A stretch of 63,794 nt of DNA, counting the filler, from Pelomyxa schiedti (Eukaryota; Protista; Evosea): the NCBI GenBank assembly GCA_020536535.1. It is 8 parts of 8 records of this genome, joined end to end, with 100 filler letters (N's around TTAATTAATTAA, not from the genome) between each part and the next. Parts side by side here need not be neighbours in the genome. Positions count along the whole stretch, not along the records: positions 12,577 to 31,002 come from JAHLWZ010000143.1; 7 more parts are not named here. The stretch is one strand, 5' to 3'. Below the pieces are notes generated by a model that worked only from the letters and a program-made list of their open reading frames with translations, was not told where the DNA came from and ran no database searches. The stretch's first letter is position 1, and every line of letters begins with the position of its first letter. The position numbers and the translations under genes are program-made. Below are positions 12,576-31,102 of the stretch, piece after piece.

Positions 12576-13741
12576 NTCTTTGCGATTAGACCGCATCCCG
12601 ATGAATTGTGAACAAGACACCCAAGGGATGAAACTGTCTCACAAATAGTATCTGAATCGCACTCAAAACTCACCTGTTTGTTGTTGCGTAGGTGGTATCG
12701 TGATTAGCATAAAAACTAAAGTTGGTTAGAGCAACTGCAACGTGCCTTCAATTCGGTTGGTGTTGGAGCCTCAGTATCAGCACCAGAATCGCAAAGTTTT
12801 TTGAGACGAGGTGTGAGAGTATCATTGACAGCCACAAGTTGGAGGTCAGTGAACTTCGTTGTTGCCTGTTGTGCATATTCTTGTGCCTCCTGTAAAACCT
12901 TCGTCTTGTTGTCGCATCCTTCAATGCTTTCTTGGAATGGGTCAGTGTGAATTGGTCGGGACAAAAATAATGCCTTTTTGGCAGTCTCTGTGATTGTATT
13001 CACTTCTGAGAGCAGTTGTGCCTCCCTGGCATTGACAAATGCAACAATCTTGGCAAATTCAGTTCGTATTTCTGACTTGACCTTCTCTGAAGCTTCTTCT
13101 GCGTTTTTGCAACACCCCTTGTTATTTGTGGTTTAAATGTCATTTCACAATAAATTTGGACGAGAACGCACAATTGCAGTGAGTTTAGACAGTGAAACCT
13201 TCTCCAGAAGCAATGACAACTTGGCACTAAGTGATGAAATGTTCTCCTTGAACTTTGGGCTCAGGTCACTGACAACAACGAAGTCGTGGTTGTTGTGGTC
13301 GATCTTCCTGATAGAATTGTGTTTGGTGTTGAACAAAAGAGAAAAAGGCACACACGTGCAGCCACGGCAAATCGGCGACTTGTCAGTGTTGCAATACAGT
13401 AGCAACTCCTCATGTGGATGCTTGGAGCATGCGCCTAGTTTTGGCGCCGTTTGTTTCTCGCAATCTTACTTAGTAGGAGGAGAAGGACCTGAGAGTGGCA
13501 CACAGGGCACGTCACTGTTGATGTTGATGAGGTGGGACTCTTCGCCGAGGTCGAGGTTCCGGGCGAATATTGCGAGCATAGAGTGATGCACTCGAGGCAC
13601 AAAGTGTGCAAACACGGCAGGAGCCTGGTGGTCGTGAGGACGTTTGGAAACACGAATTTTCCAAATTGTAGACCTTGGGTCCCGAAAGAAAGAGGAACAA
13701 CAAGGGCACGTTATTTTCCCGATCACATCGCCTCGGTCCAT
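12576..13741 (-). CDS. TRIM-like RING-B-box-coiled-coil protein (copy 1), 3' truncated by the contig end
   Basis: Spliced RING CPCCSSFFRDPR|LLPCLHTLCLECI...VTCPVC; B-box CSKHPHEELLLYCNTDKSPICRGC..HNNH; coiled coil highly similar to 18840-19500. The RING/B-box junction frame is unclear. Confidence 0.8.
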
Positions 13742-14089
13742 TCAAATCCTTGGTTTTTCCCAAGTTCGTTCTGGTCATTTTCAACCACGCAACCCCCTAC
13801 TGGTGATGCGTTCCGAAAACGTTCTGTAGGCGGGCGTAACGACGATGGTGAAGAGTGACTGCAGTTACGAGGCACCGTGGAACGGTAACGGTGTCACTGG
13901 CGATCTCACAGAAAAACGTGCAGTGGTGCACGATGCACAGCCTCGCTTTGGCCCAATGTAGGCAACTAGCCCCCACAAAGGCACCCCATCATCTGCATGA
14001 CAGACTGCCACACCAACACATGTAACTGCACAGTAAGTATTGGGGCAACAGAAAAACAATTTGTGTGATTGTTCCAACATGGAACACCC

Positions 14090-14342
14090 AGGTGGTGCTT
14101 TAAGTGGTAGTGCTTGTGGCAGTGCTCATGGTGGCAACAATGGTGGTAGTGCCTACAGTGGCAGTACTCATGGTGGCACTGCTCGTGGTGGTAGTGCTCA
14201 GAGTGGTGGTGCTTGTGGTGGTGCTCATGGTGGGGGTGCTCATGCTGGCAGTGTGCACAGTGAGAGTGCTCGTAGTGGAGGCACTCAAGGTGGCAGTGCT
14301 TGTGGTGGTGAGGCTTGCAGTGGTGGTGCTCACAGTGGTAGT
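14090..14342 (+). repeat. Degenerate 15-bp minisatellite (GGTGGTAGTGCTCAT-like, about 16 units; reads as GGSAH repeats)
   Basis: Period-15 units visible directly; ORF MEHPGGALSGSACGSAHGG... at 14079-14363. Confidence 0.75.
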
Positions 14343-14834
14343 GTTAGTCAGCTGAAAAAGTGATAATACACTGGGTACTGGTGGGTGGAAGCATATCAAC
14401 AAATAACATGGGCCTGGTAGGTGTTTAAAAAGCTCATTAAAAAGTAAATAGGAAACCACCCAAAAATGGCTCTCTTTGTTCACACATTTTTGGGTGGGTA
14501 CACAGAACAAAAAGCTCTATGTTAAGGAAATGTGCACAGAACACCAGGACCTTTCAGATGTTTACACTCTTAATGCAGTGGCACTGAGTTTGGCCCAGAG
14601 CTACAGTCCTGTTTTTGCCATTGGAACAGGGAAACTCGATCCACAATCAACACCATGACACAATTCGATGGATCTTGTGGCACTGTTCCGAGGTAAGTAT
14701 GTATCGCCCTGTTTGTGCTATGTCACACCAACCTGTTTTGTTCCACCAACAGGGTTCCCTGTAGACTTTTGGAAGGGCAACATGCCGGAAGTTGTTACGC
14801 TTTTTGTTGGGGATGGGCACACCAACCAGGCACG

Positions 14835-15800
14835 ATGACCACGCGCCCACCCAAGTGCACTGTGTGTGGGTCAGATGAGGTTCCGTGGTGGTGCCCGTGC
14901 TGCGGCGTGTCCCTGTGCAACGAAGACCAGGGACACCACTCACGTGCATTGAAGACTGCGCCACACAAGGTTTATTTTTTCATCTTCCATATTGTTTCTC
15001 ATGGGGAACATATATCACTTAGATTGAATGAACACAAGAGGCACGAATATGTTGCTGTAGGTGACCTGAGCCCAAAATTCAAGGACAACATTGCAACACT
15101 CGGATTGTTCACAATTCAATAGCAGGCACACTTATTACCAGGGATTTGCCACTCAACCACTTGATTCATCGCCTACCTTCGGCCACAGCTGACATAGTTT
15201 GAGAACATGACTAGCTTCATCAACAACACTAATTCAAGGTAATCAATTCACACTCAAAGTGGTGCCCCACAACTCCGAGGGCCCGTGCCAGGCCGTGCTA
15301 CGTGTACCGCGCCCCATATAGTACATCCACAATGACAAAGGTGCGTGTGAGTGATGGGGCAACAGTCGCATCAGCCCCACTTCCAAACGCCGGTCACACA
15401 AATCAATCGGCGTGGAGCTGGGGCGGATACACAGACATTTGTTGGTATGTTGATGCAGGGGGTGTGCTGTTCGTGGTCCACGCACCACCAGACAACAACA
15501 ACATACACATCACGAGGGTGGACCCTGCCAACCTTGCAATCCTGAAGTGGGAGGTGCCCCGCGTCAAGAGGAAGACAGGGTTAGCATTTGTTGGTGGGAA
15601 GTTCTACTTTGGAAAGTCGCACAACTAGGTAAGAACCACGTACTTGCTGGGTGTTGGGATGTTTGACACCACAATGCATGCACGATCCCGACTTTGGAAA
15701 GTCGTCTTTAGTGGATTCCGTCTACAAACCAGCTCCTCGTCATTGACCTGATGGCGGCACCGAATTCCGCGCTTTCATCTTTGACAACGTTGCTATGAAA
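14835..15800 (+). pseudogene. Decayed TRIM-olfactomedin gene (copy 2): B-box1, partial B-box2/coiled coil, deleted and frameshifted OLF domain
   Basis: CTVCGSDEVPWWCPCCGVSLC..HH; LNEHKRHEYVAVGDLSPKFKDNI; SWGGYTDICWYVDAGGVLFVVHAPPDNNNIHITRVDPANLAI; stops and deletions relative to 19228-20235. Confidence 0.75.
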
Positions 15801-15889
15801 CGAGCGCTCGTTCCGCTTCGTTTCGAATTCTCCAATTTTTAGCCGAAAACAACAGTTGGAACCAAGTTTTCTCGCAACTGTAAACAACA

Positions 15890-17781
15890 ATGGACATGGA
15901 GCAGCTTGACGCGGCGTTCGCGGCCATCAAGAAGCAGATGGCGGAACAAAAGCAGCGGGACCAGGCGGAGCTGGAGGAAGTCAAAAAGAGAGACATGGCC
16001 GAGCTGGCGGACAAGCGCGACAAGATGATGGCGCAGGTGGAGGAGGAGCGAGCGAGGCTCAAGACCGAGTGGGACTGGGTGTCACTCGCCACCGGAAAAT
16101 CCTCAAGGTCTCCTTGTGACCCCGACGAGGTTGACCCTTATTATTACCCACAAGATCTCTCGTTTTTTTTGGGTTTTCCATGTGGCTTTTATTCGTTCTT
16201 CTATTTCGTTTCTGTTTGTTGCTTTTTGACTAACTTCTATGTACGTTAAATACTACAAATAGGGGGCTGGGGAGACAAAGCTGGGAATTGGTGAAGTTGT
16301 GAAGCTGAATGTTGGAGGAGTCAGATATGACACAACAATAAAAACCCTCCAAAAATATGGAAAGTCCAGGCTTGTCACTCTTTTCAGTGGTGAGCATCCC
16401 CTTCAGCGGGATAGTGATGGCTGCTTCTTTCTTGACACAGACGGAAAGCGCTTTGCATATGTGCTGAATTTCCTGAGGCGTGGATTTGTGTCAATTCCAA
16501 AAGGAAAGGAGCACTTGGTGCGAGAGCTTCTCTATGAGGCAGACTTCTTTGGCCTTGAAGAAATGAAGGTGGAGATTAAAAAAGCAGCCGACTACTTGGG
16601 ACGCACCCAGTTCTACAACCTGTTTCCAAGTGAGAGTATTTTCATCCCTGAAGGGGTAACATTTACCTCTGCCTCTGGGGGTGGCTCCTCTGGGTCACAT
16701 TGGAATTGGAACAATACTAGAAGACCAACTTCTCTTTTTTCTATTCAAGGAAACGAAGTATCAATCAATCAAACCATGAGATTCCTTTGCTTTGTGAGAC
16801 TTCCTGGCGTCTCAAGTGGGAATAATGGCCATGCTGAGATATACCTTGCCGGGTCTTCAATTGCGCATTATTGGCGCAATGAGCCTAGCGGATATGTCAA
16901 CCAAGTTTTCTTCAACCAAGTAATTGAGGCTAACTCTGGAACAAAGTTGAGTGTCTACAACAACTCCCTAGGCCACTGTTACAATCACCAGATCTCCTCA
17001 ACATCATGTCTCCTCCTTCTTCCCCTTCGAGACACAGTTCCCGTATTGCAGTGTTCCTCAACAACCAATTCAGGGAACTGCTGGTACTGGACCCAAAAGG
17101 CCGAGTGCCAACCTTTCACCGTGGCAAACCAAACCATCACAATCAAGCCTGAGGGACTGTACTTCGTTTTGGTAAGGGTGACGGGGCATTCAACCGGTGG
17201 CTATGTTCAATTGAACTGCGCCGGTTCTTCAATTGCACAGTGCCACATGAACGAAGGCAACAGCTACTCCAACTCTGCCATCATTTCCGAGGTTGTGCCT
17301 GCACAGGCTAACACCCAACTCAGTTTCATGCAACAGCTACACTCCATCACAGTACGGCGCAGCCACGGCACTTTCAGTGCTTGGGCCGCTTCCAGGAGAC
17401 TCCTACATTTCCTTTTCATGCAGTGCAGCAGCTTCGCCAAACCAATACTACAAGTGGCAATTCAGGCATGGTTGTTCCGCCCTTGCAAGGGTTGAAAGTG
17501 GCTCTTCCATCTTCATCTCACAGGCAGGGCTCTATCTGGTCATTGTTCGGATCACAGCAAGTTCCAACAGTGCCAACTCTGGGTGGGCGGAACTTCAGGT
17601 AAATGGCATTCCATATGCTCAGGCATTCATCTACAATGCAAATTCTTATTGGAACACGGTGCACTTCTCTGAGGTGCTGGAAGTTCAACCTGGATGCAAT
17701 CTTTCAGTTTGCAACAGGGGCCTCAACACCTACAACATCTGCACTACGGAAGTGCACACCCTCATTCTCATTCGTATGTGA
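15890..17781 (+). CDS. Coiled coil + KCTD-type BTB/POZ + three tandem C1q/TNF-like (BclA-C-like) domains; one frameshift at about 17320
   Basis: Intron 16130-16262; VKLNVGGVRYDTTIKTL...DSDGCFFLDTDGKRFAYVLNFLR (BTB/T1); three repeats of about 130 aa with I.I...GLY.V.VR......L...G..IA..........EV......LS. Confidence 0.8.
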
Positions 17782-18060
17782 CATTTGCTCAAGGAACATA
17801 AAACTCCTTTTGTTTAAAATATTACAGAGCTACATCGTGATATCCGGGAGCCTAACAGATTAGCTGTGAAACCACCAACTCATTCTAACCTCACTCTGCC
17901 TGAGGCAATCCCCAAGAAGCCCAAGCGGACTCGTAAATCGAAATCCAACCCAAGTGCCGTACCGCCGACTCAGACCGCCCATCGAACGTAGGTGCTCGGC
18001 AGAGATTAGCTCCGGTTTGTTGATGGAATTCACGACGTCGCCCTCATGTATTTGCCGGAT

Positions 18061-18117
18061 GTTGGGAGTGTTTTTGTTTCTGCAAGTATCATCATATGTT
18101 TTGCCAAGGTAGAGCAG
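18061..18117 (-). pseudogene. Short inverted fragment of the OLF-domain gene
   Basis: Reverse complement CTACCTTGGCAAAACATATGATGATACTTGCAGAAACAAAAACACTCCCAAC resembles CTACTTTGGCAAG (about 20118) joined to TATGATGACACTTACAGAAACACACTCCCAAC (20181). Confidence 0.5.
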
Positions 18118-18120
18118 GCG

Positions 18121-18162
18121 CAGCAAAACCCGCCTGGCGGGTTTTGGTGAGAGTGCTCTAGT
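18121..18162 (+). mobile_element. Helitron-like 3' terminus (GC-rich hairpin, 11-nt spacer, CTAG|T)
   Basis: CAAAACCCGCC-T-GGCGGGTTTTG (18124-18146) followed by GTGAGAGTGCT and CTAG (18158-18161), then T. Confidence 0.5.
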
Positions 18163-18481
18163 CCTTTTGATTCATCACTTGCATGTTGATACTTTGGGCA
18201 TAGGAACCTGGTGTCAATTAAATTAAATCAGCAGTTGAGACGCAGTCAAGTTTTTTTCTTCTGAAGCGGTCCATAGTTCCATCAACAGTCGCTCTGACAT
18301 CAGGGAATCATAGTAATCCATTAATGAAGTTTATTAAAGAACCACCTTCCGTGTCCCTATTGGCATGCCGATTCAAGTGCGTGTGTGGCCACATTTTGTT
18401 TTGGCTCGTTTTTTACCATCATTTGAAAACGAAAAGATCACCGTCTCTTCCCAGAAAAAGATCAAAAAAAAAAAACGAAGT

Positions 18482-20400
18482 ATGGCGCCATTCTCGTGTA
18501 CCCTTGTTGTTCCTCTTTCTTCCGCAACCTGTGTGTACCATGAATCTCACACACTCTTGCCCTGTTTGCACAGCTTATGCCTCGAGTGCATCCTCCTCAC
18601 CCGACCCCAGCGTAACCTCGTTAAGTGTCTCCCCGCGATCTATCGTTACATGCCCTGTGTGCCCGGAAACAACAAAAAACAGACCACAACTCCACCTGAG
18701 GCGTTCCCCTTTGACTTTTGCGGTTTTATTGCAATACTGACGAGTCACTGATATGCCAGGATTGCACGTATGCTTGTCTAATGGGGAGCATATATATATA
18801 TCATCATTTAGGTTGAATGAGCACAAGAACCATGAATGTGTTGTTGTCAATGACCTGCGCTCCCAATTCAAGGACAACATTGCCTCACTCTGTTCGCAGT
18901 TGTAATTGTACCTGGAGAAGGTTTCAATTTCGAAGCTCACCACAATTGTGTGTCTTCCATTCCATCATCCTAATTCTTTTCTTCCTCACAAACAACAAGG
19001 AGTGTTGCAAAAACACAGAAGAAGCTTCAGAGAAAGTCAAGTCAGAAATACGAACTGAATTTGCCAAGATTGTTGCTGTTGTCAATGCCAGGGAGGCTCA
19101 ACTGCTCTCAGAAGTGAATACAATCACTGGAACTGCGAAAAAGGTCTGTTAATTTTGCTGTTGTCCCCTTTCAACTGACAGAGACCACAAGACATTCCAA
19201 GAACACATTGAGGAATGCAACAACAAGATGAAGGATGCACAAGAGGCGCAAGAATATGCGCAACTGGTGACAACGAGGTTCTATGACCTCCAACTTGTGT
19301 CTGTCAATGATACTCTCACATCTCGTCTTAAAAAACTTTGCGCTTCTGGTGCTGAGAATTGTTCTCAAATACCAAATGAATTTAAGGTATCTTCCCCACA
19401 TCCACAATGTAAAATGCACAAACAAAAGGTGAGATTTGAATGTCATTCCACTTCCGTTTGTGGAACAATTTCATCACTTGGGCGTCTTGTTCACGACTCT
19501 GCCATCAGAAAACGTGATGCTAAGGTAACGACAGAGGCAGCAGAAACTACGACGATGACGAGGACACTCAAACAACTTGACACATTGTCGATGGTGCCCT
19601 CCATTCCACCGCGTCAGGCACACAGGCTGTTTGTTGACAACGCAACTGGAAAAGTGTACTGCGACAGTACGTACCACAATCCAGAACTGACAGAATTCGA
19701 GAACATGACGAACTTCATCAACAACACCAACCCAAGACAATTTACACTCAAAGTGGTGCCCCATTTCCCCCCGGGCCCGGGCCAGGCCGTGCACAACGGC
19801 CACGTGTACTGCACCCCATACAGTACATCCACAATGACCAAGGTGCGTGTGAGTGATGGATCAACAGTCGCAACTGCACAACTCAGAACCGGTCATTCAA
19901 AGCAATCATCATGGAGCTGTGGTGGATACACAGACATTTGCTGGTATGTTGATGCAGGGAGTGTGCTGTACGTGGTCCACGCACCACCAAAGGACCACTA
20001 CCAGAGCAACATACACATCACGAGGGTGGACCCTGACTCCCTCGCAATCCAACAAACGTGGGAGGTGCCCCGCATCAAGCAGCATACTGCCTTTGCATTT
20101 GTTGTGTGTGGGAAGTTCTACTTTGGCAAGTCTGATCGCAGCCAGGAAATCAATGGGTATTTGATACCGCGACTGGTGTTTATGATGACACTTACAGAAA
20201 CACACTCCCAACAACCAGCAAGTATGTGGCTCTGACTGCGTGGATACAGCTCCTCGTCATTTCCCGCTCTAATGACAGCACTGAGCTCCGCTACTTCATC
20301 TTTGACAATGTTGCTCTGTGAACCCAGCACCGGTCGAACTGTGTGTCATCACGGGAAAGTTTGCATCTGTATGTATTCCGGGCCCATTCGCAAGAAAAGT
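18482..20400 (+). pseudogene. TRIM-olfactomedin gene (copy 3): RING, B-box, coiled coil and a nearly complete OLF domain; disabled
   Basis: LLPCLHSLCLECI..VTCPVC; coiled coil; OLF motifs ELTEFENMTNF, GPGQAVHNGHVY, WSCGGYTDICWYVD, NIHITRVDPDSLAIQQTWEV, AFAFVVCGKFY. In-frame TAA at 18903 (TCA in copy 1) and frameshifts near 18600 and 20155. Confidence 0.8.
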
Positions 20401-20497
20401 AACTTTATACACCACGTCATTTTACTGGAACCAACAAGCTGTAAAAGTATGTTTTACAATCATCAATTGTTCATTTTTTCCCTTCTATTTTGTTTTC

Positions 20498-22199
20498 CTA
20501 GAACGTAGACATAACACTGCTGATGTTTAGTGCAGAAGCCATTGAGCCACTGCTAGGTGTTGACTGTGTTGCCAAATTGGCTATTATAAAGGGTATTACC
20601 CCAAGTATCATTGTTCCTGTGATATAAGGATACGCCCGGCTCATTGGCATGTTCCCACCAATGGATTCATTTACCATGGTGGACACTGTTGACAGGCACC
20701 CACAGAATCCGGCTGTGAGACCCCATGACAACTGGTATGCGAGCGAAGNNNNNNNNNNNNNNNNNNNNNNNNNNNNNNNNNNNNNNNNNNNNNNNNNNNN
20801 NNNNNNNNNNNNNNNNNNNNNNNNNNNNNNNNNNNNNNNNNNNNNNNNGGATACGCCCGGCTCATTGGCATGTTCCCACCAATGGATTCATTTACCATGG
20901 TGGACACTGTTGACAGGCACCCACAGAATCCGGCTGTGAGACCCCATGACAACTGGTATGCGAGCGAAGATTCCGGGTTTCTGTGCTGTGCAGGTGAGAA
21001 TGTAGCGTACAGAATACAGGCCAGTGTGTTGCACAACATTGTGTGCCATGGAATTCCAATGTACTTCCAGAGCAGTGCAACTTTTTCGCGTGCAGTGAAC
21101 TCCATGTGTGCGAGCGGTGCGAAGTCCTCACCTTGTAGCTCCCCTTCTTTTAGGAGCTGTTTTGCAATGACCCGCTTGTCTTTTGGAGCCCATGAGATGA
21201 ATTTGGCTGCTCCCTTAGAGACACACCAACGCAAAAGTGCACCATATGGTCCAATTGCCATAGGAACTAAAAATTCCTTGGCGTCATCATTTTTGGCATC
21301 TGACAGTGCGTAGAGCGCTCCAACACATATCTTTTTTTTTGTTGTTGTTGTACTTTTTAGATCGAAACAAAAGAAAACCGTCTTACCGCGATATAAACAG
21401 AGAAGCAGAGCAGTGCAATTATGGTGACTCTCCTTTTAGTTATTACATGACTCTGCCTGCTAACCCTTTTGAGGTTTCTTTTGAAAATCTCGTAGGCTTT
21501 CAAGTGCCTATTTGGAAACAATAATATCTAAGTAAAGCTTAAAAGTGTTGGTGGAAGGAAAAACAAAAGGTTACCTTCCGGACTGGTAACACAAAACGGG
21601 GACAGCCCACCCAATTATCCAACAAGCAATACCTTCCAAAACTCTTGGAGTTGTCATCAAAGATCCAACATGTGACTCCCACCCACTGAATGTTGTGAGG
21701 CTGCCACAAAATCCAATAGACATAGCAATTCCCCAAGGGGATGGTTTTGTACCATCTTCCAAATAAGCCTGCTTGATCGCCAAGAACCCCATTATGAAGC
21801 ACCCCACACTATTCGAGAGTATGTCTCTCGGAATAGCAGTGCTCAAATCTCCCACATAGTAATTCCATGCGAATACAAATACAATCCTAATTGAGGTTTA
21901 ATTTGGATTAACTAACTGCCTTCGCCCCTACGAGCACAACCAAACATTCCAAAATAAAACGGGGGGGAAAAAAAAATCCCAAAAACACACCTGATTGCCA
22001 CACCAGCCACGGAGCACACAGTAATAAGTGCCACAATTTGGATATACGCAGCCCAATCGCACGGTGCATTTGGAGTCACGGCTGAGCTGGTAGTGAACAG
22101 GTCCTGGGGCCTGTGGTCACGCAGCAGCCTTTGCTTTTGCATACCAAGTTCGCTGTTGTACGACTGCCCGATCAACTGCCACATTGGGTGGGCTGCCAT
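20498..22199 (-). CDS. FEX1: Eukaryotic fluoride exporter FEX (two CrcB/Fluc domains)
   Basis: VAGVAIR; ILSNSVGCFIMG; GFCGSLTTFSGW; GPYGALLRW; TMLCNTLAC; GFCGCLSTVST. Confidence 0.92.
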
Positions 22200-22326
22200 T
22201 CCGACTTACGGGTACCCGCGGCCTAGCGAGCGAACAGAAAACCAAACAAACGAAAAGCCGAAAGTAATTTCTCCTTGTTGTTGATTGATTATTCTGTCAG
22301 GTTTGTTTTGTGACAAGTGAAGTGGA

Positions 22327-24918
22327 CTACTGACGAAAGAGGGTGAATAGAAAGAGGAGTAGAAGAATGTGGGTGTGTGGCCCTTTGGGACTTGTGCTGC
22401 CTGTGCTAGTGCTAGTTATAATTGGGGATGACGATGTAGGGGAGGGCGAGGTGTATGACGATGCTGGATTACTGTCTGTGCCAGAGTGGTGGTGATTGGA
22501 AGAGCCGCTGCTATCGCGGCACTCGGATGATGAAACAGGGAGAACTAACTGGAGGAGGTCAGGATACAGTATCAATATCAAATGGTGGAGAGTGAAACCT
22601 TGGAAGTTGGCGATATATATACGTTATTGGAAGCATTGACTGGTGTCACAGTGTAATCTGCCCAAATGTCCACCCCTTAACCGTACTGAGCATAAAATAT
22701 GAAGGACAATCAACTACCGGTATTGGCGTTTCTATCGAATATCGGATAGTTTGATGAAGTTACAATTATCCCAATGCTGTGGCTGGGAAGAAATACCCAC
22801 GAAAGGGGGTTTGTGATCTCAACAATGACTGAATAATGGTTAATACATCCGACCTTGGTAATATTCATCTCTTACGGGAATTCCTCTGCCCCTCTTTATA
22901 ATTTGGGGTGTATTTAAGTCTTTGAGCTCCATCACCAATCAAGTAATGAACTATGGGCATGATAAATTGTATACCAGTGTACTATGTACTACTTTTCTTG
23001 GAGTTGTTCCAATATACATCCACAAGCCTCACCATGAAGTCAGTGTCCACACAGGTTGTACTGACAGAAAGATTGGCGTAGGTATTGCCTTCAATAAGCA
23101 AGCAGGAAGATAGCGGCTGTTGTAGGGGTAATAGAGGCAAAATAAGATTGCTGTATTGACCTCTGACTCAAACAACAAATAGTCATTGCGAATCAGAACT
23201 TGGTCTTGGTCATGGGGTCCATGAAACTCTGTTGACGAGAACGTTGTTCCACCCTCGGTGGGGGATGGATCGTATGGTACGTAATTGATTGATAAGATCT
23301 TTTCCTCTGCTGGGGGAGTGAGTTGTAAAGTACCGTCTGCATGTGGGTACAACTATTTTCTGTTACGGTTTGGAGGGGGAAAAGATAGGGAAAAACAATA
23401 CATTCAGTGCTTCAGATTGAGGGGGAAATTGTTGTACAGAGTGTATTTCTGAGATAGATTCATTGAGTCTTAGATATCTTATTGGCGACCAAGAGTCAAC
23501 ATCATTTGATCTTAGTTGAAGGTGGTCAAAAACTTGCCTTGCACTTGCTGTGGAAACCTACAATCCACGAAGGTAACGATCATAGAATCGAGAAGCATGG
23601 GATTGGATGATGAACGAAGTATCCACGAACATATCTTCTTCAGGGCTCAATGTCGCTCCACCTGTTATTCTTGGATCAGGTAATAAAAAATAAAAGCAGT
23701 ACCAGTTGCAAAGTGTATCCAAGGACCATAAAGTAGTTTATGTTTAAGTCTGATAGCTGAGTCACCGTAATCATGTAACTCTGCAAAACTATCCAACATG
23801 TATGAGTGGTCCCACCAACCACCAACAAGAAGTGCTGGCACCTTAGAAGTATCCAAACATGAACTTAGATGTTTGGAAAGAAATTTATTTTTAATCTAAT
23901 TGAGACAGAGAGGGAATACTGTACATGAATATCAGCTGGATCATATTGCGATTCTATTTGCTTCCATATCAAATTATATGAAGGTACGAGCAAGACATAA
24001 CTCACAGAATAGCCCTATTCTACATTGTTAAGACCTTTTTATACCTGAAAGTCGTGCATACTAAAGAAAGCAAGAAATGGTAGTGGTCAAGATACAAAAT
24101 TCCACCGGGATAATACGTTTTGTATAGAACCTGAGGTTTGTTGAATAAATGCATGAAGACGCAAAATGAGAATGTTCCAACCTGAAAGTCATGAAATACA
24201 GGGACTATACACTTGAGATGAGGAGGGTTTTGTAGTGCTCCCCTGAACTGGGCTTCTGCCAAAGCTGAGGCACCAAACATTCCTATGTTACCATCACTGA
24301 GTGAAGGGTTCCCCGCAATCCACTCTATAATGTCATGGACATCCCAACCTTAAAAAGCAGAGATGTTAACTTACGCATGTCTGAATAAAATAGAAATACC
24401 AAGCTGTGTTGAATTGCCCATTTTGCCACCAGACTTTCCTCTTCCACGCCAGTCACAAACAACTATCGTGTAGTTGCAATTATTGAATACAGGCTGGGAC
24501 TGCCCCCATAGCACACTCGTCCTCAATGACTCTATTCCTTTAAATCCAATAAGACTGATTAACGCCAACTTAAGTTCTCCCCTTCCCCCCGCACAACGTT
24601 TTTACTTTTTTTCAAAACAGATCACAGACCATAAGGCGTGTGCACGTAAACAGCAGGACCAGCCGCAGATCCAGATCTCGTAGCCGCCCAGCACCACAAA
24701 TTCACACCATCTCGCGCAGTCACATTGTAATACGCACCAATCGTAGTGCACGCAGGGGACCCGCCGGCAACTGCAACTGCACCCGCAACGAAACCTCTAT
24801 TCAGAAGATGTGCACCACGATCTGGGCCGTCCTTCTCTGTTGGTGTTTCACACGACTCTATCGCGACTGACGCCAACACCGCCGCTGCGACCCACCATAA
24901 CCGAAAAGATGTTTTCAT
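22327..24918 (-). CDS. Secreted CocE/NonD-family (peptidase S15 / PepX-C) serine hydrolase with an S/T stalk and hydrophobic C-terminus
   Basis: Signal peptide; ARDGVNL; VHTPYG; DWRGRGKSGG; SDGNIGMFGASALA (nucleophile); LLVGGWWDH; LYGPWIH; YDPSPTEGG; TSSNYPIFDRNANTG; tail ...SPKGPHTHILLLLFLFTLFRQ*. Confidence 0.88.
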
Positions 24919-24994
24919 GTACGCCGAAATTGAATCCAAGAAACGTAGTTTAAGTTAAACTCAGAAAGGAAGGTAAGGCAGGAGAGGAGAGCCT

Positions 24995-26438
24995 TTACGA
25001 CACCTTGATGGGGAGAAGCATGACAGTTCCATAAAATGCAATCCCGGCAATGATAGCAATAATAATTGACAACCATCTATTCCGATTTGTCCCTAGTTCC
25101 TGGCAACAAGTGAGTGACAGAATAGCTGGTAGAGGAAAGTAGAATTACTAAGTGTTTTGGTATTGCTGGTGTGGAGTTGATCAAGTTCTGAAGTCTTGCC
25201 ACAATCTCATTTGAAGAAGGCTGCTCACTCACACTCACACTTGTGCACTTAAAAAATCCGTTAGAGCTTCACATTGAGAAGTCATTAACCATTTTCATCA
25301 AATCTTTGAAGCTCTCCTCCCATTGTTTGTTGGCATGAAAATTGCCAAACCCATTCATGGCCTGTCATTCTTCATTACCAGAGTAACACAGTAGAGATGA
25401 TACCTCTTGAATCATTATTCCAAAACTAGTCATATTGAGTGTTTTAATGTAATCATCTGATTTAGCACCTGTAGACATCATCTGATTTGGTTGGAACGTC
25501 ACCACTTGATATGCCTGGAGGGTATATACTCCTCTCTATTATTCCTCGCTTACGTGCAGGTCCCCCTTCAGGGGCAGTCAATCCAAAATCACAAACCTGC
25601 CATAAGTTTTTAAAAAGGAGGAAAAACAGATTGCTACACACCAAATACTTCTCTTTGCCCGATTCTCTGCACACAAGGACATTCCGCCACGCCAAGTCAC
25701 TATATAACATAAGGGGAAAAATAAAGGCAAGTAACTCACCGGTGGACATAGCCTTTCATGTGGAAAAATAGCATTGCATTAGCTACATCCTATTCAACTA
25801 TTACTCACAAGAACCAATGAGAGTAGGGATACATGGAGCATGCATAAAATAGTTTGGAACGGCAGCAACTGACCATAGTACATCATTTGTACACTGCCAT
25901 TTTGGGAGTGACGATCCCCTCGCCTTCAGGGAAATGGAGCACACCCAAGAGGGGCAACGTGTACTCACATGACAGTTCACAGTGCAGCTGAGCTTCTAGT
26001 GCCACTTCAGCCTTCATTTCTTCAGCTCTTCGACATGGCCAGACATCCGGTAGGGGGAAATACTTCACAGCGACAGGTTTTATGACTTTCCTTCTTCTCT
26101 TGGGCTCCCTAGGTCTGCAGTCAGCAGCATAAACCTTACAGTAGATGATTACGACTTTAGAACATATACAGAGGTACGGGAGCAAAACTGCCTGAATCGA
26201 CGTATATGAGGGAATCAAAGGTCACTTGATAAGTCAGGTCTGCAATTGGTTTTGGCACCTGGGCCGAAGCTGAGCAGACACTCACTACGTAAAGAAAACC
26301 CACATCACTGCCAAAGACTACCCGGAAGGCAGTCGATATCAGCCTCTTCGAAGACTGGTTGGGACAGCGCATGTTTTCAGAATTGTATAGGGGTCCTGGA
26401 AACGGGGAATCATAGGATTTTGGAAACGGCGAGTGCAT
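24995..26438 (-). CDS. Divergent tyrosine-kinase-like protein kinase with a C-terminal transmembrane tail
   Basis: VDSGSFA; VAVK; spliced VHR|DLAWRNVLV; CDFGL; last exon NRWLSIIIAIIAGIAFYGTVMLLPIKVS*. Confidence 0.75.
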
Positions 26439-26825
26439 ATGGACGTTAGTTGTCTACTGTGGTGAGGTGACTTCGCGTAGTTCTAAGTACGGTTCTCACT
26501 GATGGATTTTAGGGGAAAACTACCTCGAATCTGATCAAGGTGGGACACCCTGAACAGATTCTAGGGCCTTTATAAGGCCGGCACAACTCCATTGTAGTTA
26601 CTCAAGCAATAAGCAACAAAGTAAAAACACAAAACTTCTGTGTTGGTACTTGTGTCGAAAGTAAGAAGCCCAAGTAAAACAACAACCATCAACACCCCAG
26701 CACACCTCACAGCACTACCTAAGCCCAATCTACCTCGGAACAACTACTTCCTTTTTGTTTTGTTGTACGTATTATGAAACCAACTTGTTTTCCCAAACGA
26801 TGGTTTGAGAATTTATGAGTAAAAA

Positions 26826-28087
26826 TTAACTTCTCCCATTGATTAGCTGTACGGCGGATAAAAACGTGGGATTGGAGAGGAACTCATGGGGTGGTATGTA
26901 TTGGAATGTGTATGGTACCACACATGTTGGATCACAGGTGGTAGTACCAAGTGCCCCGTATGAGGCATTGTCGTAGTCACAAATCTGTTGTGTATTTAGG
27001 GCTGAAGATGGTATATTCGGTTACCTGTAAGTGTGCATTTATGTGTGTGAAGTAGGGTGGGGGCTGAGATGTCACTGAGCGAACTCCGGCAGTTCCCAGT
27101 GCCTTTGACACATGTTGTGATGTACCATTACAGTCACCAAGTACAATGAGAGCTATTGGGGCAGTGGAAACCTCCTATTTAATTATATTAGAAAGGTTCA
27201 CTTGCGTTTTGTTGGTTGTTTGTTACTTGCTCTATATCATGAATGTACTGGGAAAGGATGGAAAGCCCTGATCCGAAAGGAACGTGAGTTCCAACCACTC
27301 TCAACTCAAAGGCAGGATTCCCATCAGCACCAACAACAGTGAATCTGCAGTCAACAATTGCGTTGTGTGGCTTTCCTTCATATGGGACCCAGAACCAGTT
27401 TTGAAGTTGAGTGCGTTCCTTGTTGTACATTACAACCGTGTGATTTGCATCCGCGCCACTGGCTGAGCTCCACACACCTTCCACCTTTGCCGGATCCATT
27501 GATTTAAGCTTCTTCAGCATACCTCCTCCAACTTCTTGTAACGCAAGGACATCCACTCTCCCTTCGTTGAACAAATCTTTGATGACCTGCAAAGTTTTAA
27601 GTTCTCTCACAGTAAGTCCATCTCCATGCTCTGCCCTATAGAAATGTATTTTCTTTAGTTTTCATCAGTTTCAGCATTTCATTCATTTATATATCTACTT
27701 ATTGAAGTTGCTCTTTATAAACAGCCCCCGCTCCAAAACCCATAAGTGACAATTGTAAGAAATGGGCACCATCACTCACGGATGATCGTCAGCCGTGATC
27801 GCACTGCCGTTGAGTCCCTGCTCGTCCTTGTAGATATATCGCATGAAGGCGGTGTTGAGGCAGTTCCAAGACGCAACCCTCGCGGACGCGCCCTGTGGCT
27901 GCTGCTGCTGCAATTGGGGCGCAATTGACACGCAGATGGGCAAGTGGTCCGAGCAAAACTGCCACCTCGATCCCGCCTTGTCCCCGCTGCGCAGTCCCGA
28001 CGACGACGCCGTGGTCGCGCCTCCTCCCCCGCGGCCTCGTCCCGTGGTTGTTGTAGCTGTCGTGGCACCTCTGCCTCGTGCGGCCAT
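26826..28087 (-). CDS. Endonuclease/exonuclease/phosphatase (EEP) family protein, circularly permuted motif order
   Basis: Motif order: SDHLPICVSI, ASWNCL, VDVLALQEV, VGTHVP, IVLGDCN, YFTH, CDYDN, then stop at 26826. Confidence 0.82.
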
Positions 28088-28260
28088 TGCTCTCGTATGA
28101 ACGAAAAAAAAACGAAATAAGGAAATGCGGATCTGACAGAAAGTCGCGTGCCAAGCAAATTCGGAGTTGAGAAAGGTAAGATACAGTGGCATCACTGTTG
28201 AAAACTACATCTTGGGTGCGAATGGAATTCTTATTGTGTTCGTTGTATCGTTGTACTGTA

Positions 28261-29042
28261 CTAGTATCTTCCGTATGTGGATGGGGGTCGGGACTGCATT
28301 GTTGGAATTGCCATTGTTGTGGATTGAACAGGAGCACGGATTGGTTCCCGCAAGTTGCGTGGCTTCCACCACTCGGGGCGGCAGTAATCGTTGCACTCGT
28401 GGTGAACAAAGAAGTCGTTGATTCCTTGTGGTCCGAGGTCTGTGACTCCAAAGCTCCTTGTGGCTGACATGATGACTGGATCGCTGATCACCGCCGCGTC
28501 TCTGTACACTCCACCTTGAAGGTCGCACAGCAGCTTTTTGCCTCGATTGATGTGGTAAGAAAAGTGACTCAGTGCTTGCATGACTTGGCCCCACGGTGTG
28601 CCATCCTCGGACCAACCAGTGTTGGAGTTGAACTTCTCCCAGTTCTCAATGAATGGCTCCACAAGAATCTTCTCACCCTCCCGCTCCCCATAACATTCCC
28701 AGACCTCCGCTCTGTTCACGAGTATCGGTTTGTTGACAAAGTGTGCATCATTCCACTCCTGCACAATTGACACTGCCTCGTCGAGGGCGAGAATATCCCG
28801 TTCATAGAAATGCTCCTCGAAAACGGCACCCTCTTTGAACCACTTTGCCACGCAACGCTGTCCGGAACGAGTCCCTGCACGCCGGTGAAACGGCAAGCAC
28901 AAGTGGGGGGAAAAAAACCTTCGTTGTAAGTGCCCATACCAACCCATCGAAACGCGCCAGACGTGAAGGGACGAAGGTCAACAACAGCATGATTGGACAG
29001 GTTCTCCCTAACCGATGTCCAACGGTAGTCGTGCGCCGCCAT
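28261..29042 (-). CDS. Stand-alone alpha-kinase (eEF2K/MHCK family), one intron
   Basis: PFTSGAFR; CVAKWF; LVEPFIENWEKFNSNTG; QALSHFSYH; LLCDLQG; SDPVI; FGVTDLGPQGINDFFVHHECNDYC. Confidence 0.95.
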
Positions 29043-29147
29043 CAACGAGGAGAGATTCTGAACATTTTCCCAGAATCCATCACTCTTATTTTCGCCGTGA
29101 TGTTGCTGCACACCGACTAAAGCTACGAAACAACTGCACGCAGCGGA

Positions 29148-30882
29148 ATGTGTGGTCTTCATGTTTCGTCACCTGCGCCGCCGTCGTCCGCAGCCGGCGT
29201 CCCACAAGTAGCGACCAAGCCATCGAGCCCACCATCTGTCCTGACCACGAGAGCGGTTCTGTGGTCGCACCAAATGGAGGCGCTCGCCACAGCGACGCAC
29301 GCGCGGTGCGGGGCACAGAGCCCCGCGCGGCGCCTGACCCCGCCGTTGCTCGCTGCGGTGTGCCACGCGTTCTGGGACCCATCTTCATCATCATCTTCAC
29401 CACCATCAACAACGACGCGGCTGAGTGATCACGGCGAAGGTGATACAAATGGTGGTGGCGTCGCCGTGGTGGATGTGGCTCTGGGCGTGCGTGTGAGGCA
29501 AGTTGCGTCGGGAGGAGAGACAGATTCGGCTAAGACACATGGAGATGGATACGGCGACGATGGCGTGGCGGTGGTGTCTAGTGACGTGGTGTGTGTCAGC
29601 GTGTGCGTGCCTCTGCTTGCTGTCTTAAGTGTGAAGAATCTGGATCGCACGAAGGCACTCGAGCAAGAGAAAGCTATTCTCTCGGCCCCGACGGTTGATC
29701 GTCGGAGTGGTTGTGATACAGCTTGTGATGGCTGGAAACTCATTGGCCCACATGGTGACCGTATCATCAAGATGTCGAACTCAAATGGTCCAGGCAGGGG
29801 AACCTTCTACTTTATGCCTGGCGATTGTGATCGTGGTGTTCCACAAGGAGGGGCCGACAAGCCTGTGGTTGGACCCAGGTTTCTGCTTCAGGAAAACTAC
29901 CGTTCAGTTTCGTACAAGTGCCAGGCAGGTACCAGCAAGTGGTGGGCCTGCTGTGACACCAGGGAGCTGTTTTTGGTTGATCTATGCAACAAAGGGAGAA
30001 TTGCAGGGCATCATTTGGAGTATGGCCTCTTTGTTGATCAGCTTTTCCGCAGCGAGGTCAATCCAAACGAGCTTGTTGTTGTTGTGGTTAATTCTTACCC
30101 CCATTTCTTTGTTTTTGATGTGGAGAGCAGCCTCAAAACAGAGAATCTGACCCCTGTGAGTTCAACAAACTGTTGCATTTTTGGCGTTTCCCAGTATCTG
30201 TCAGCCATCATGTGCATGAAGAATTCAGGCAACAGGGTGTTTATTGTTCAATACCGAGACCCAGCTGACAAAACACTGGAGCAGAGCGTCATCTTCAACG
30301 TGGAGGAGGAAACAGGATTTTCCAAGGTTGTGACTGATTCTGTTCTGAAGCTGTGCCATTTGACACAGTCACTGTTNNNNNNNNNNNNNNNNNNNNNNNN
30401 NNNNNNNNNNNNNNNNNNNNNNNNNNNNNNNNNNNNNNNNNNNNNNNNNNNNNNNNNNNNNNNNNNNNNNNNNNNNACTGGAGCAGAGCGTCATCTTCAA
30501 CGTGGAGGAGGAAACAGGATTTTCCAAGGTTGTGACTGATTCTGTTCTGAAGCTGTGCCATTTGACACAGTCACTGTTCTGCACCTTGCACCGTTCCTCA
30601 GGCACCTCCACCACCACATCGCATCAGGGCATGTGTTGCCGAATCTGGGACTGCAATGACACATCAAATCCACTGAGAGTGATCCAGGACGCGGTGGAGG
30701 GTTGTGTGAGCATTGATGCCACTTGTGGCCTGCTGTTTGTCTGCACCAGCAACAACCAAATCAAGGTGGTTGATGCACTCTCTGGTGTTGCGCTCGCCAC
30801 ACTTGAAGTTCCCCCTTCGTTCTCTCTCGAACTCACCCAAGTCGTTGGCTCTGCTTCACTCCACCAGTCCAAGAGTTGCTAA
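29148..30882 (+). CDS. Lineage-specific 'RCGARSPAR-motif' family protein (motif + putative beta-propeller); spans a 100-N gap with duplicated flanks
   Basis: WSHQMEALATATHARCGAQSPARRLTPPLLAAVCHAFW; FFVFDVESSLKTENL; C-terminal IKVVDALSGVALATL. Confidence 0.75.
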
Positions 30883-31102
30883 ATAAGAGCTTTCAAGGGG
30901 AAGAAAAGTTTCCAAACACCATAGAGAGTACCACAGCACCGGAATCATTCTTTTCATTTTCCCAGAAGAAATCTTGTTTCGTTTTTTTCTCAAGATCCTG
31001 CANNNNNNNNNNNNNNNNNNNNNNNNNNNNNNNNNNNNNNNNNNNNTTAATTAATTAANNNNNNNNNNNNNNNNNNNNNNNNNNNNNNNNNNNNNNNNNN
31101 NN

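Follow-up and report, generated by a model that had tools for sequence, protein, structure and literature searches.

Contig JAHLWZ010000143.1 (C143) of the anaerobic archamoeba Pelomyxa schiedti carries three paralogous members of a gene family in which a RING finger, B-box1, B-box2 and coiled coil (the RBCC module of TRIM proteins) are followed by an olfactomedin (OLF) domain, and which we call TRIM-OLF. The contig occupies positions 12577-31002 of the window, the whole stretch of 63,794 nucleotides that was analysed. We read the copies by six-frame translation and protein-to-genome alignment. A first-pass annotation of this DNA had proposed three RBCC paralogues within 8 kb, the second and third continuing into an OLF domain. 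We found all three (Table 1), and the olfactomedin motifs that the annotation quoted are present in the sequence. Both downstream copies contain an OLF, but in copy 2 the RBCC part is reduced to B-box1 and half of B-box2, so that it is not a full RBCC gene.

Copy 1 had been described as truncated before its C-terminus, and it does end at the contig edge, immediately before the expected start of the OLF. Its B-box1 exon is gone, yet an in-frame splice is possible. A paralogue on contig C854 (L029) shares 95% DNA identity with copy 1 and runs on into the OLF. Copies 2 and 3 are disabled, as the annotation had stated, and we mapped their lesions. Copy 2 has lost the RING and the coiled coil, and its OLF contains at least four frameshifts and two TAG stops; positions 15302-15625 still match the Pfam OLF profile (E=3.2e-10). 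In copy 3 the first RING Cys is changed to Tyr (18499), a TAA stop lies at 18903, B-box1 and half of B-box2 are deleted together with a frameshift near 18717, and a second frameshift lies near 20158. The OLF of copy 3 (19228-20232) matches PF02191 with E=1.3e-22. Contigs from three DNA sequencing runs, which are probably the assembly's own source, span these lesions and show zero differences from the window. The lesions are therefore not assembly slips, and assembly error as their cause is unsupported.

Table 1. Features of the TRIM-OLF locus on contig C143, in window positions
Feature	Position	Strand	Content
TRIM-OLF copy 1	12577-13741	-	RING exons 13741-13674 and 13624-13470, B-box2, coiled coil, start of last exon
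Dispersed repeat DNA	13830-14720	.	Between copies 1 and 2; includes a Gly/Ser-rich low-complexity stretch
TRIM-OLF copy 2, pseudogene	14740-15797	+	Post-RING linker, B-box1, half of B-box2, broken OLF (about 15174-15797)
BTB_2 gene	15890-17781	+	Coiled coil, BTB_2 (Pfam E=1.5e-18), repeated ~120-aa beta-rich domains
TRIM-OLF copy 3, pseudogene	18469-20321	+	Degenerate RING, B-box deletion, coiled-coil exons
Copy 3 conserved introns	18768-18811, 18948-18999, 19144-19191, 19387-19428		
Copy 3 last exon	19429-20321	+	Post-coiled-coil linker and entire OLF (about 19570-20318); OLF intron-free

The repeat DNA matches 50 places in the genome (about 68-100% identity) and is probably transposon-derived. 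The BTB_2 gene is arranged head-to-head with copy 1. Its paralogue on C854 (C854:1119-2255, of which C854:1602-2255 matches at 88% identity) is arranged likewise with L029. Because the same pair recurs on C854, the block of copy 1 and the BTB_2 gene represents a segmental duplicate; on C143, the repeat DNA and copy 2 sit inside this pair. The genome has two copies of the BTB_2 gene, each head-to-head with a TRIM-OLF gene. We obtained no confident Pfam or PDB match for its ~120-aa beta-rich domains, and its product is a possible CUL3 adaptor whose putative sensor domain is of an unrecognised type. Two further features of the window are unrelated to TRIM-OLF: an alpha-kinase gene (28261-28947, minus strand; Pfam E=3e-45) and a Fluc/CrcB fluoride-channel exon (21571-21855, minus strand; E=2e-11). 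Identical stretches of about 100 bases at 20649-20748 and 20870-20969 flank an N gap and likely represent a scaffolding overlap.

The TRIM-OLF family in the P. schiedti genome

The P. schiedti assembly comprises 52.4 Mb in 5337 scaffolds, with about 7.4 introns per gene (PMC8887013). About 23 OLF loci are present. NCBI lists six models of 634-656 aa under the name 'TRIM71', each with a RING, B-box1, B-box2, coiled coil and OLF. The genome-wide search for intact genes of this architecture yielded at least seven lesion-free loci. In seven of them, spliced protein-to-genome alignment placed seven introns at identical residues and phases with zero lesions. Three further loci are lesion-free but truncated by contig ends, and at least six copies are broken, including two in the window. 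These counts bear out the birth-and-death evolution that the first-pass annotation had suggested; the propeller face is also diversifying (see below). Apparent frameshifts at residues 290-293 in three loci (L030, L032 and L034) were gone once GC-AG donors were allowed, and each of these genes has a GC-AG intron at that site.

The resulting 8-exon structure recurs on at least seven contigs, at protein identities of 55-85%. The gene models rest on DNA: all seven loci have open reading frames, and their canonical introns are conserved. In all paralogues the post-coiled-coil linker and the entire OLF lie within the single last exon, so the fusion of RBCC and OLF is independent of any predicted splice.

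Other loci surround this family. Genome-wide, at least 150 B-box matches were scored, from 309 candidates, a B-box/TRIM-like expansion that is very large for a protist. Sister RBCC loci without an OLF nearby occur on C1667, C1348, C1124 and C615. A divergent Pelomyxa OLF (L039:2769-3926, on C867) is 45% identical to the TRIM-OLF domains, carries an unrelated N-terminal domain of ~150 aa and has no RBCC upstream; it may be an unfused outgroup of the family. One NCBI model at the end of C167 (P0068) fuses a partial OLF with DEP/RasGEF domains and is probably a gene-prediction chimera.

The RBCC part is recognizable throughout. The RING (C3HC4) zinc ligands C12, C15, C27, H29, C32, C35, C58 and C61 are invariant in the six full-length proteins. 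The Pfam RING score is at or slightly below the cut-off in five of the six; matches in the PDB are the TRIM2 and TRIM34 RINGs. B-box2 is detected by Pfam with E about 1e-10 to 1e-11, and the B-box1 pattern is seen with Asp in the sixth ligand position. Compared with the PDB, the RBCC part matches that of TRIM28 (E=5e-16) and of TRIM2/3. The AlphaFold2 (AF2) model of the full-length protein contains two B-box-sized modules, a long helix and the propeller, with the helix continuous over residues 211-321 (~110 residues) and followed by a second one at 324-347.

The C-terminal domain matches OLF (PF02191) with E of 1e-22 to 1e-28 and 81-99 bits, against a gathering cut-off of 23.9. Its AF2 model has a pLDDT of 93.6 and a pTM of 0.92, and the 50 matches listed by Foldseek are all OLF structures, the best (TM-score 0.81-0.83) being to noelin. 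NHL or Kelch identity, which the first-pass annotation had considered, is ruled out by Pfam, where neither family appeared, and by the listed Foldseek matches. NHL (PF01436) matched no member of the TRIM-OLF family, and OLF stands in its place. We found no signal-like or transmembrane segment in the TRIM-OLF proteins, whose N-terminus is a zinc finger.

The best full-length matches outside Pelomyxa are mostly TRIM-NHL/filamin proteins. The TRIM-NHL proteins of class VII (TRIM2, TRIM3 and TRIM71) resemble the Pelomyxa proteins in having a RING, two B-boxes, a coiled coil and a C-terminal beta-propeller. They differ in that their NHL propeller is six-bladed, whereas the OLF propeller is five-bladed, and the Pelomyxa proteins lack filamin. 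The name 'TRIM71' on the NCBI models is a similarity label only. TRIM-OLF is predicted to represent a Pelomyxa-specific TRIM family whose C-terminal target-binding module is a five-bladed OLF propeller where other TRIMs have PRY-SPRY or NHL.

Origin and distribution of the OLF domain

No RING-B-box-OLF protein was found outside Pelomyxa by a full-length profile search, which is word-seeded and limited to that extent; its other matches were TRIM-NHL, filamin or plain RBCC proteins. The best 150 matches of an OLF profile search likewise included no other RING-containing OLF protein. Matches from the ESM Atlas were either generic TRIMs (score 0.86) or OLFs of animal and bacterial proteins, with no TRIM-OLF cluster among them. 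A metagenome scan gave only bacterial-type or unassigned OLF loci, and no viral relatives were found. A literature search, with most subscription papers outside it, returned no description of TRIM-OLF, and searches for OLF with horizontal gene transfer, in protists or with myxobacteria returned nothing relevant. These results agree with the suggestion of the first-pass annotation that OLF is an unrecognised C-terminal class among TRIMs.

We compared the Pelomyxa OLF to those of animals and bacteria. Animal olfactomedins (noelin, myocilin, latrophilin and gliomedin; PF02191) share its fold (TM-score 0.8) and motifs, and noelin and myocilin also place a coiled coil before the OLF. They differ in being secreted or membrane proteins, in having a Ca2+ triad and a disulfide in most subfamilies, and in forming a separate clade; the Pelomyxa proteins have no signal peptide. 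The myocilin triad is D380/N428/D478 (PMC6719662). The equivalent positions in Pelomyxa are Cys/Phe/Ser (Cys519/Phe567/Ser616 in P0008), and the N-terminal Cys required for the disulfide between the OLF termini is absent from Pelomyxa TRIM-OLF.

In an exhaustive OLF profile search, bacterial proteins scored highest (199-229 bits) and animal OLFs scored about 90 bits. The nearest bacterial OLFs are secreted Cys-rich or Ig-stalk proteins, one of them from a Myxococcales metagenome-assembled genome, and a scan of GTDB found OLFs of Polyangium, Myxococcales and Polyangiales at 40-43% identity. These Myxococcota proteins, secreted Cys-rich or lipoprotein OLFs such as MSP62909.1, share the Ca2+-free pattern of the Pelomyxa domain. 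Since its bacterial relatives have the same pattern, the Ca2+-free state was inherited. They differ from TRIM-OLF in lacking an RBCC and in being surface proteins that are exported and have a STIG1-like or Ig-like stalk. Secreted OLF proteins are numerous in bacteria, and include Myxococcota/Deltaproteobacteria lipoproteins and PEP-CTERM proteins (P0070-P0077, P0091, P0098, P0111 and P0208; L057-L059).

Phylogenetic analysis placed animal OLFs with a different bacterial clade (support 100/100), and an approximately unbiased (AU) test rejected a grouping of Pelomyxa with animal OLFs (p=4e-5). The tree, the AU test and the P. schiedti gene structure rule out that the domain is of animal origin or comes from a contaminating animal. 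Such a phylogeny had been proposed as a way to separate horizontal transfer from ancient origin. It placed the Pelomyxa OLF in a non-animal lineage, whose nearest relatives in the searches are Myxococcota proteins, and did not settle the direction of transfer. The OLF-coding region contains no introns, compared with about five expected from the gene's own intron density, and its GC content at third codon positions is 64-69%, compared with 40-46% in a coiled-coil exon. Both features fit a bacterial gene captured as a terminal exon. We conclude that the Pelomyxa OLF was probably taken from bacteria. Animal OLFs lie nearer to one bacterial OLF group than to the Pelomyxa clade, a point relevant to where animal olfactomedins came from.

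OLF domains also occur in other protist proteins. The OLF profile search identified B-box1-B-box2-coiled-coil-OLF proteins without a RING in ciliates: a Nyctotherus ovalis transcript (P0200) and gene-sized chromosomes with C4A4 telomeres (L044-L054 and L098), including a two-gene tandem chromosome. Two sources, the cercozoan Mataza sp. and an unassigned read assembly, gave BTB-BACK-OLF proteins (L042 and L043; P0080 and P0081). Their architecture is KLHL-like, with OLF replacing Kelch. Both types resemble TRIM-OLF in that a C-terminal OLF is joined to what is predicted to be a cytosolic ubiquitin-system scaffold. They differ in that the ciliate proteins have no RING and the cercozoan BTB-BACK is a CUL3-adaptor module. 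Ciliate OLFs group with other bacterial OLFs (98/96), and a grouping of Pelomyxa and ciliate OLFs was weakly rejected (p=0.036). Because the ciliate, cercozoan and Pelomyxa domains fall on separate branches of the tree, OLF may have become fused to ubiquitin-system scaffolds on more than one occasion.

Selection on the propeller and models for TRIM-OLF function

We tested for selection in the single OLF exon of 11 paralogues using our own codon-model script. The overall ratio of nonsynonymous to synonymous substitution rates (dN/dS, or omega) was 0.41-0.43. Allowing positively selected sites improved the fit (M1a versus M2a, twice the log-likelihood difference 50.7; M8a versus M8, 49.6), with omega about 3.25 on about 10% of codons. 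Faces of the propeller were assigned from the strand order of the model, with the b-c and d-a loops defined as the top; the long B-10/C-11 loop of OLF is likewise on the top face (PMC4488277). Top-face loops make up 37% of columns and contain 11 of the 13 positively selected sites, as well as 15 of the 18 columns whose entropy is 2 bits or more. Entropy was 1.06 on the top and 0.37 on the bottom (p=2e-6). Positive selection persisted when the loops rich in indels were left out and when blades 1-2, 3 and 4-5 were each given their own tree (p=2e-5, 0.002 and 0.047). None was detected in two coiled-coil exons, which are short as controls. Taken with the gene structures and models above, the data show that TRIM-OLF is a soluble RBCC protein ending in a propeller, one face of which is diversifying, and that the family duplicates and decays.

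This mode of evolution resembles that of the RBCC-B30.2 families (TRIM5 and the fish finTRIM and btr genes), which show lineage-specific amplification, pseudogenes and a C-terminal binding domain under positive selection, and in which new classes also arise through C-terminal domain gain (PMC3137616). Those families differ in being vertebrate and in using another sensor fold; the Pelomyxa family belongs to an amoeba, and any antiviral activity of it is hypothetical. Bacterial and archaeal endosymbionts live free in the cytosol of P. schiedti (PMC10579272). Given the resemblance to RBCC-B30.2 immune families and this cytosolic population, we consider it fairly probable that TRIM-OLF proteins are non-self sensors, acting as cytosolic predicted ubiquitin ligases engaged in an arms race.

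Under this model, an intron-free OLF gene of Myxococcota type would have become the last exon of an RBCC gene already present in Pelomyxa, which then amplified. By analogy with TRIM biology, the ~110-residue helix would form an antiparallel coiled-coil dimer bearing two propellers, whose variable top-face loops would bind a fast-changing cytosolic ligand. A repetitive target surface could then drive clustering through the B-boxes, gathering the RINGs for ubiquitination, and the ubiquitinated target would pass to autophagy or proteasomal disposal. The likeliest targets would be foreign: prey bacteria that have escaped from vacuoles, endosymbionts in the cytosol, or viruses.

Several observations weigh against the non-self sensor model. 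The Pelomyxa gene models are ab initio, and the RING is poorly predicted by AF2 (low confidence on a shallow alignment). The first zinc loop of the RING mostly has Cys at an E2-contact position that is usually Ile or Val, and His or Gln replaces the 'linchpin' Arg. These non-canonical residues leave the predicted ligase strength in doubt. The Ca2+-free state, being shared with bacterial relatives, is not a cytosolic adaptation. Within its clade, the Pelomyxa OLF has no resolved sister in the tree, which therefore does not show the direction of transfer. Finally, gene conversion among paralogues, which was partly controlled, can inflate omega, and the selection tests used a home-made script and short control exons.

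Other explanations account for parts of these data. TRIM-OLF proteins could be real ligases with host substrates, their loop variation reflecting sub-functionalisation of paralogues and no arms race. The overall dN/dS of the OLF, the general TRIM expansion that the B-box matches reveal in this genome and the resemblance of cercozoan BTB-BACK-OLF to an ordinary KLHL-type substrate adaptor all favor such a role. We nevertheless consider it unlikely, as omega of about 3 limited to one face and frequent pseudogenisation match the RBCC-B30.2 immune-family pattern (PMC3137616). The atypical RING residues and the RING-less ciliate proteins would also suit catalytically weak or inactive scaffolds or receptors, resembling autophagy receptors or partnering other E3 enzymes, with a structural RING; invariance of all eight zinc ligands makes this somewhat more doubtful still. 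It seems very improbable that the fusion itself is false and was produced by assembly, whole-genome amplification, gene prediction or animal contamination. The genome does come from amplified single cells of a polyeukaryotic culture (PMC8887013), and the gene models are ab initio. However, the 8-exon structure is repeated on at least seven contigs among proteins that are 55-85% identical, the linker-OLF junction lies inside one exon, the short GT/GC-AG introns are consistent with P. schiedti and the domain is not animal-like by the AU test.

More tentatively, we extend the non-self sensor model to other protists. It is conceivable, though short of probable, that OLF is an old bacterial surface propeller captured several times by protists (on RBCC in Pelomyxa, B-box-coiled-coil in ciliates and BTB-BACK in a cercozoan) as a cytosolic ubiquitin-system receptor, and that TRIM-OLF forms a diversifying cell-autonomous immune repertoire against cytosolic bacteria or symbionts, TRIM5-like without PRY-SPRY and outside animals.

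TRIM-OLF adds a C-terminal class to the TRIMs. A pan-eukaryote survey does not mention olfactomedin, and the MATH type is the one TRIM class that it recognises outside animals (PMC3503706). That class, subfamily A (TRIM37-like, RING-B-box-MATH; Marin 2012, PMC3503706), includes Dictyostelium; it differs in having one B-box and a MATH domain, and is single-copy in Dictyostelium (PMC5758549). C-terminal domain gain is a known route to TRIM classes, so TRIM-OLF is not a new kind of system, and its architecture is already visible in the public Pfam annotation of Pelomyxa proteins. The TRIM literature consulted places diversifying multigene families in animals (PMC3503706, PMC3137616). P. schiedti shows that an amoeba can have one too, whereas the TRIM genes previously described there were single and TRIM37-like. 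OLF domains have been described as extracellular and from multicellular organisms (PMC4488277). The bacterial and protist clades, and a predicted intracellular use in protists, extend the domain beyond its extracellular role in animals. Natural OLFs that lack both Ca2+ and the disulfide and have a hypervariable top face provide a map of the ligand-binding surface for a fold whose ligands are poorly known. In P. schiedti, an amoeba with symbionts in its cytosol, the TRIM-OLF family is a candidate mechanism, open to testing, for distinguishing resident from invader.

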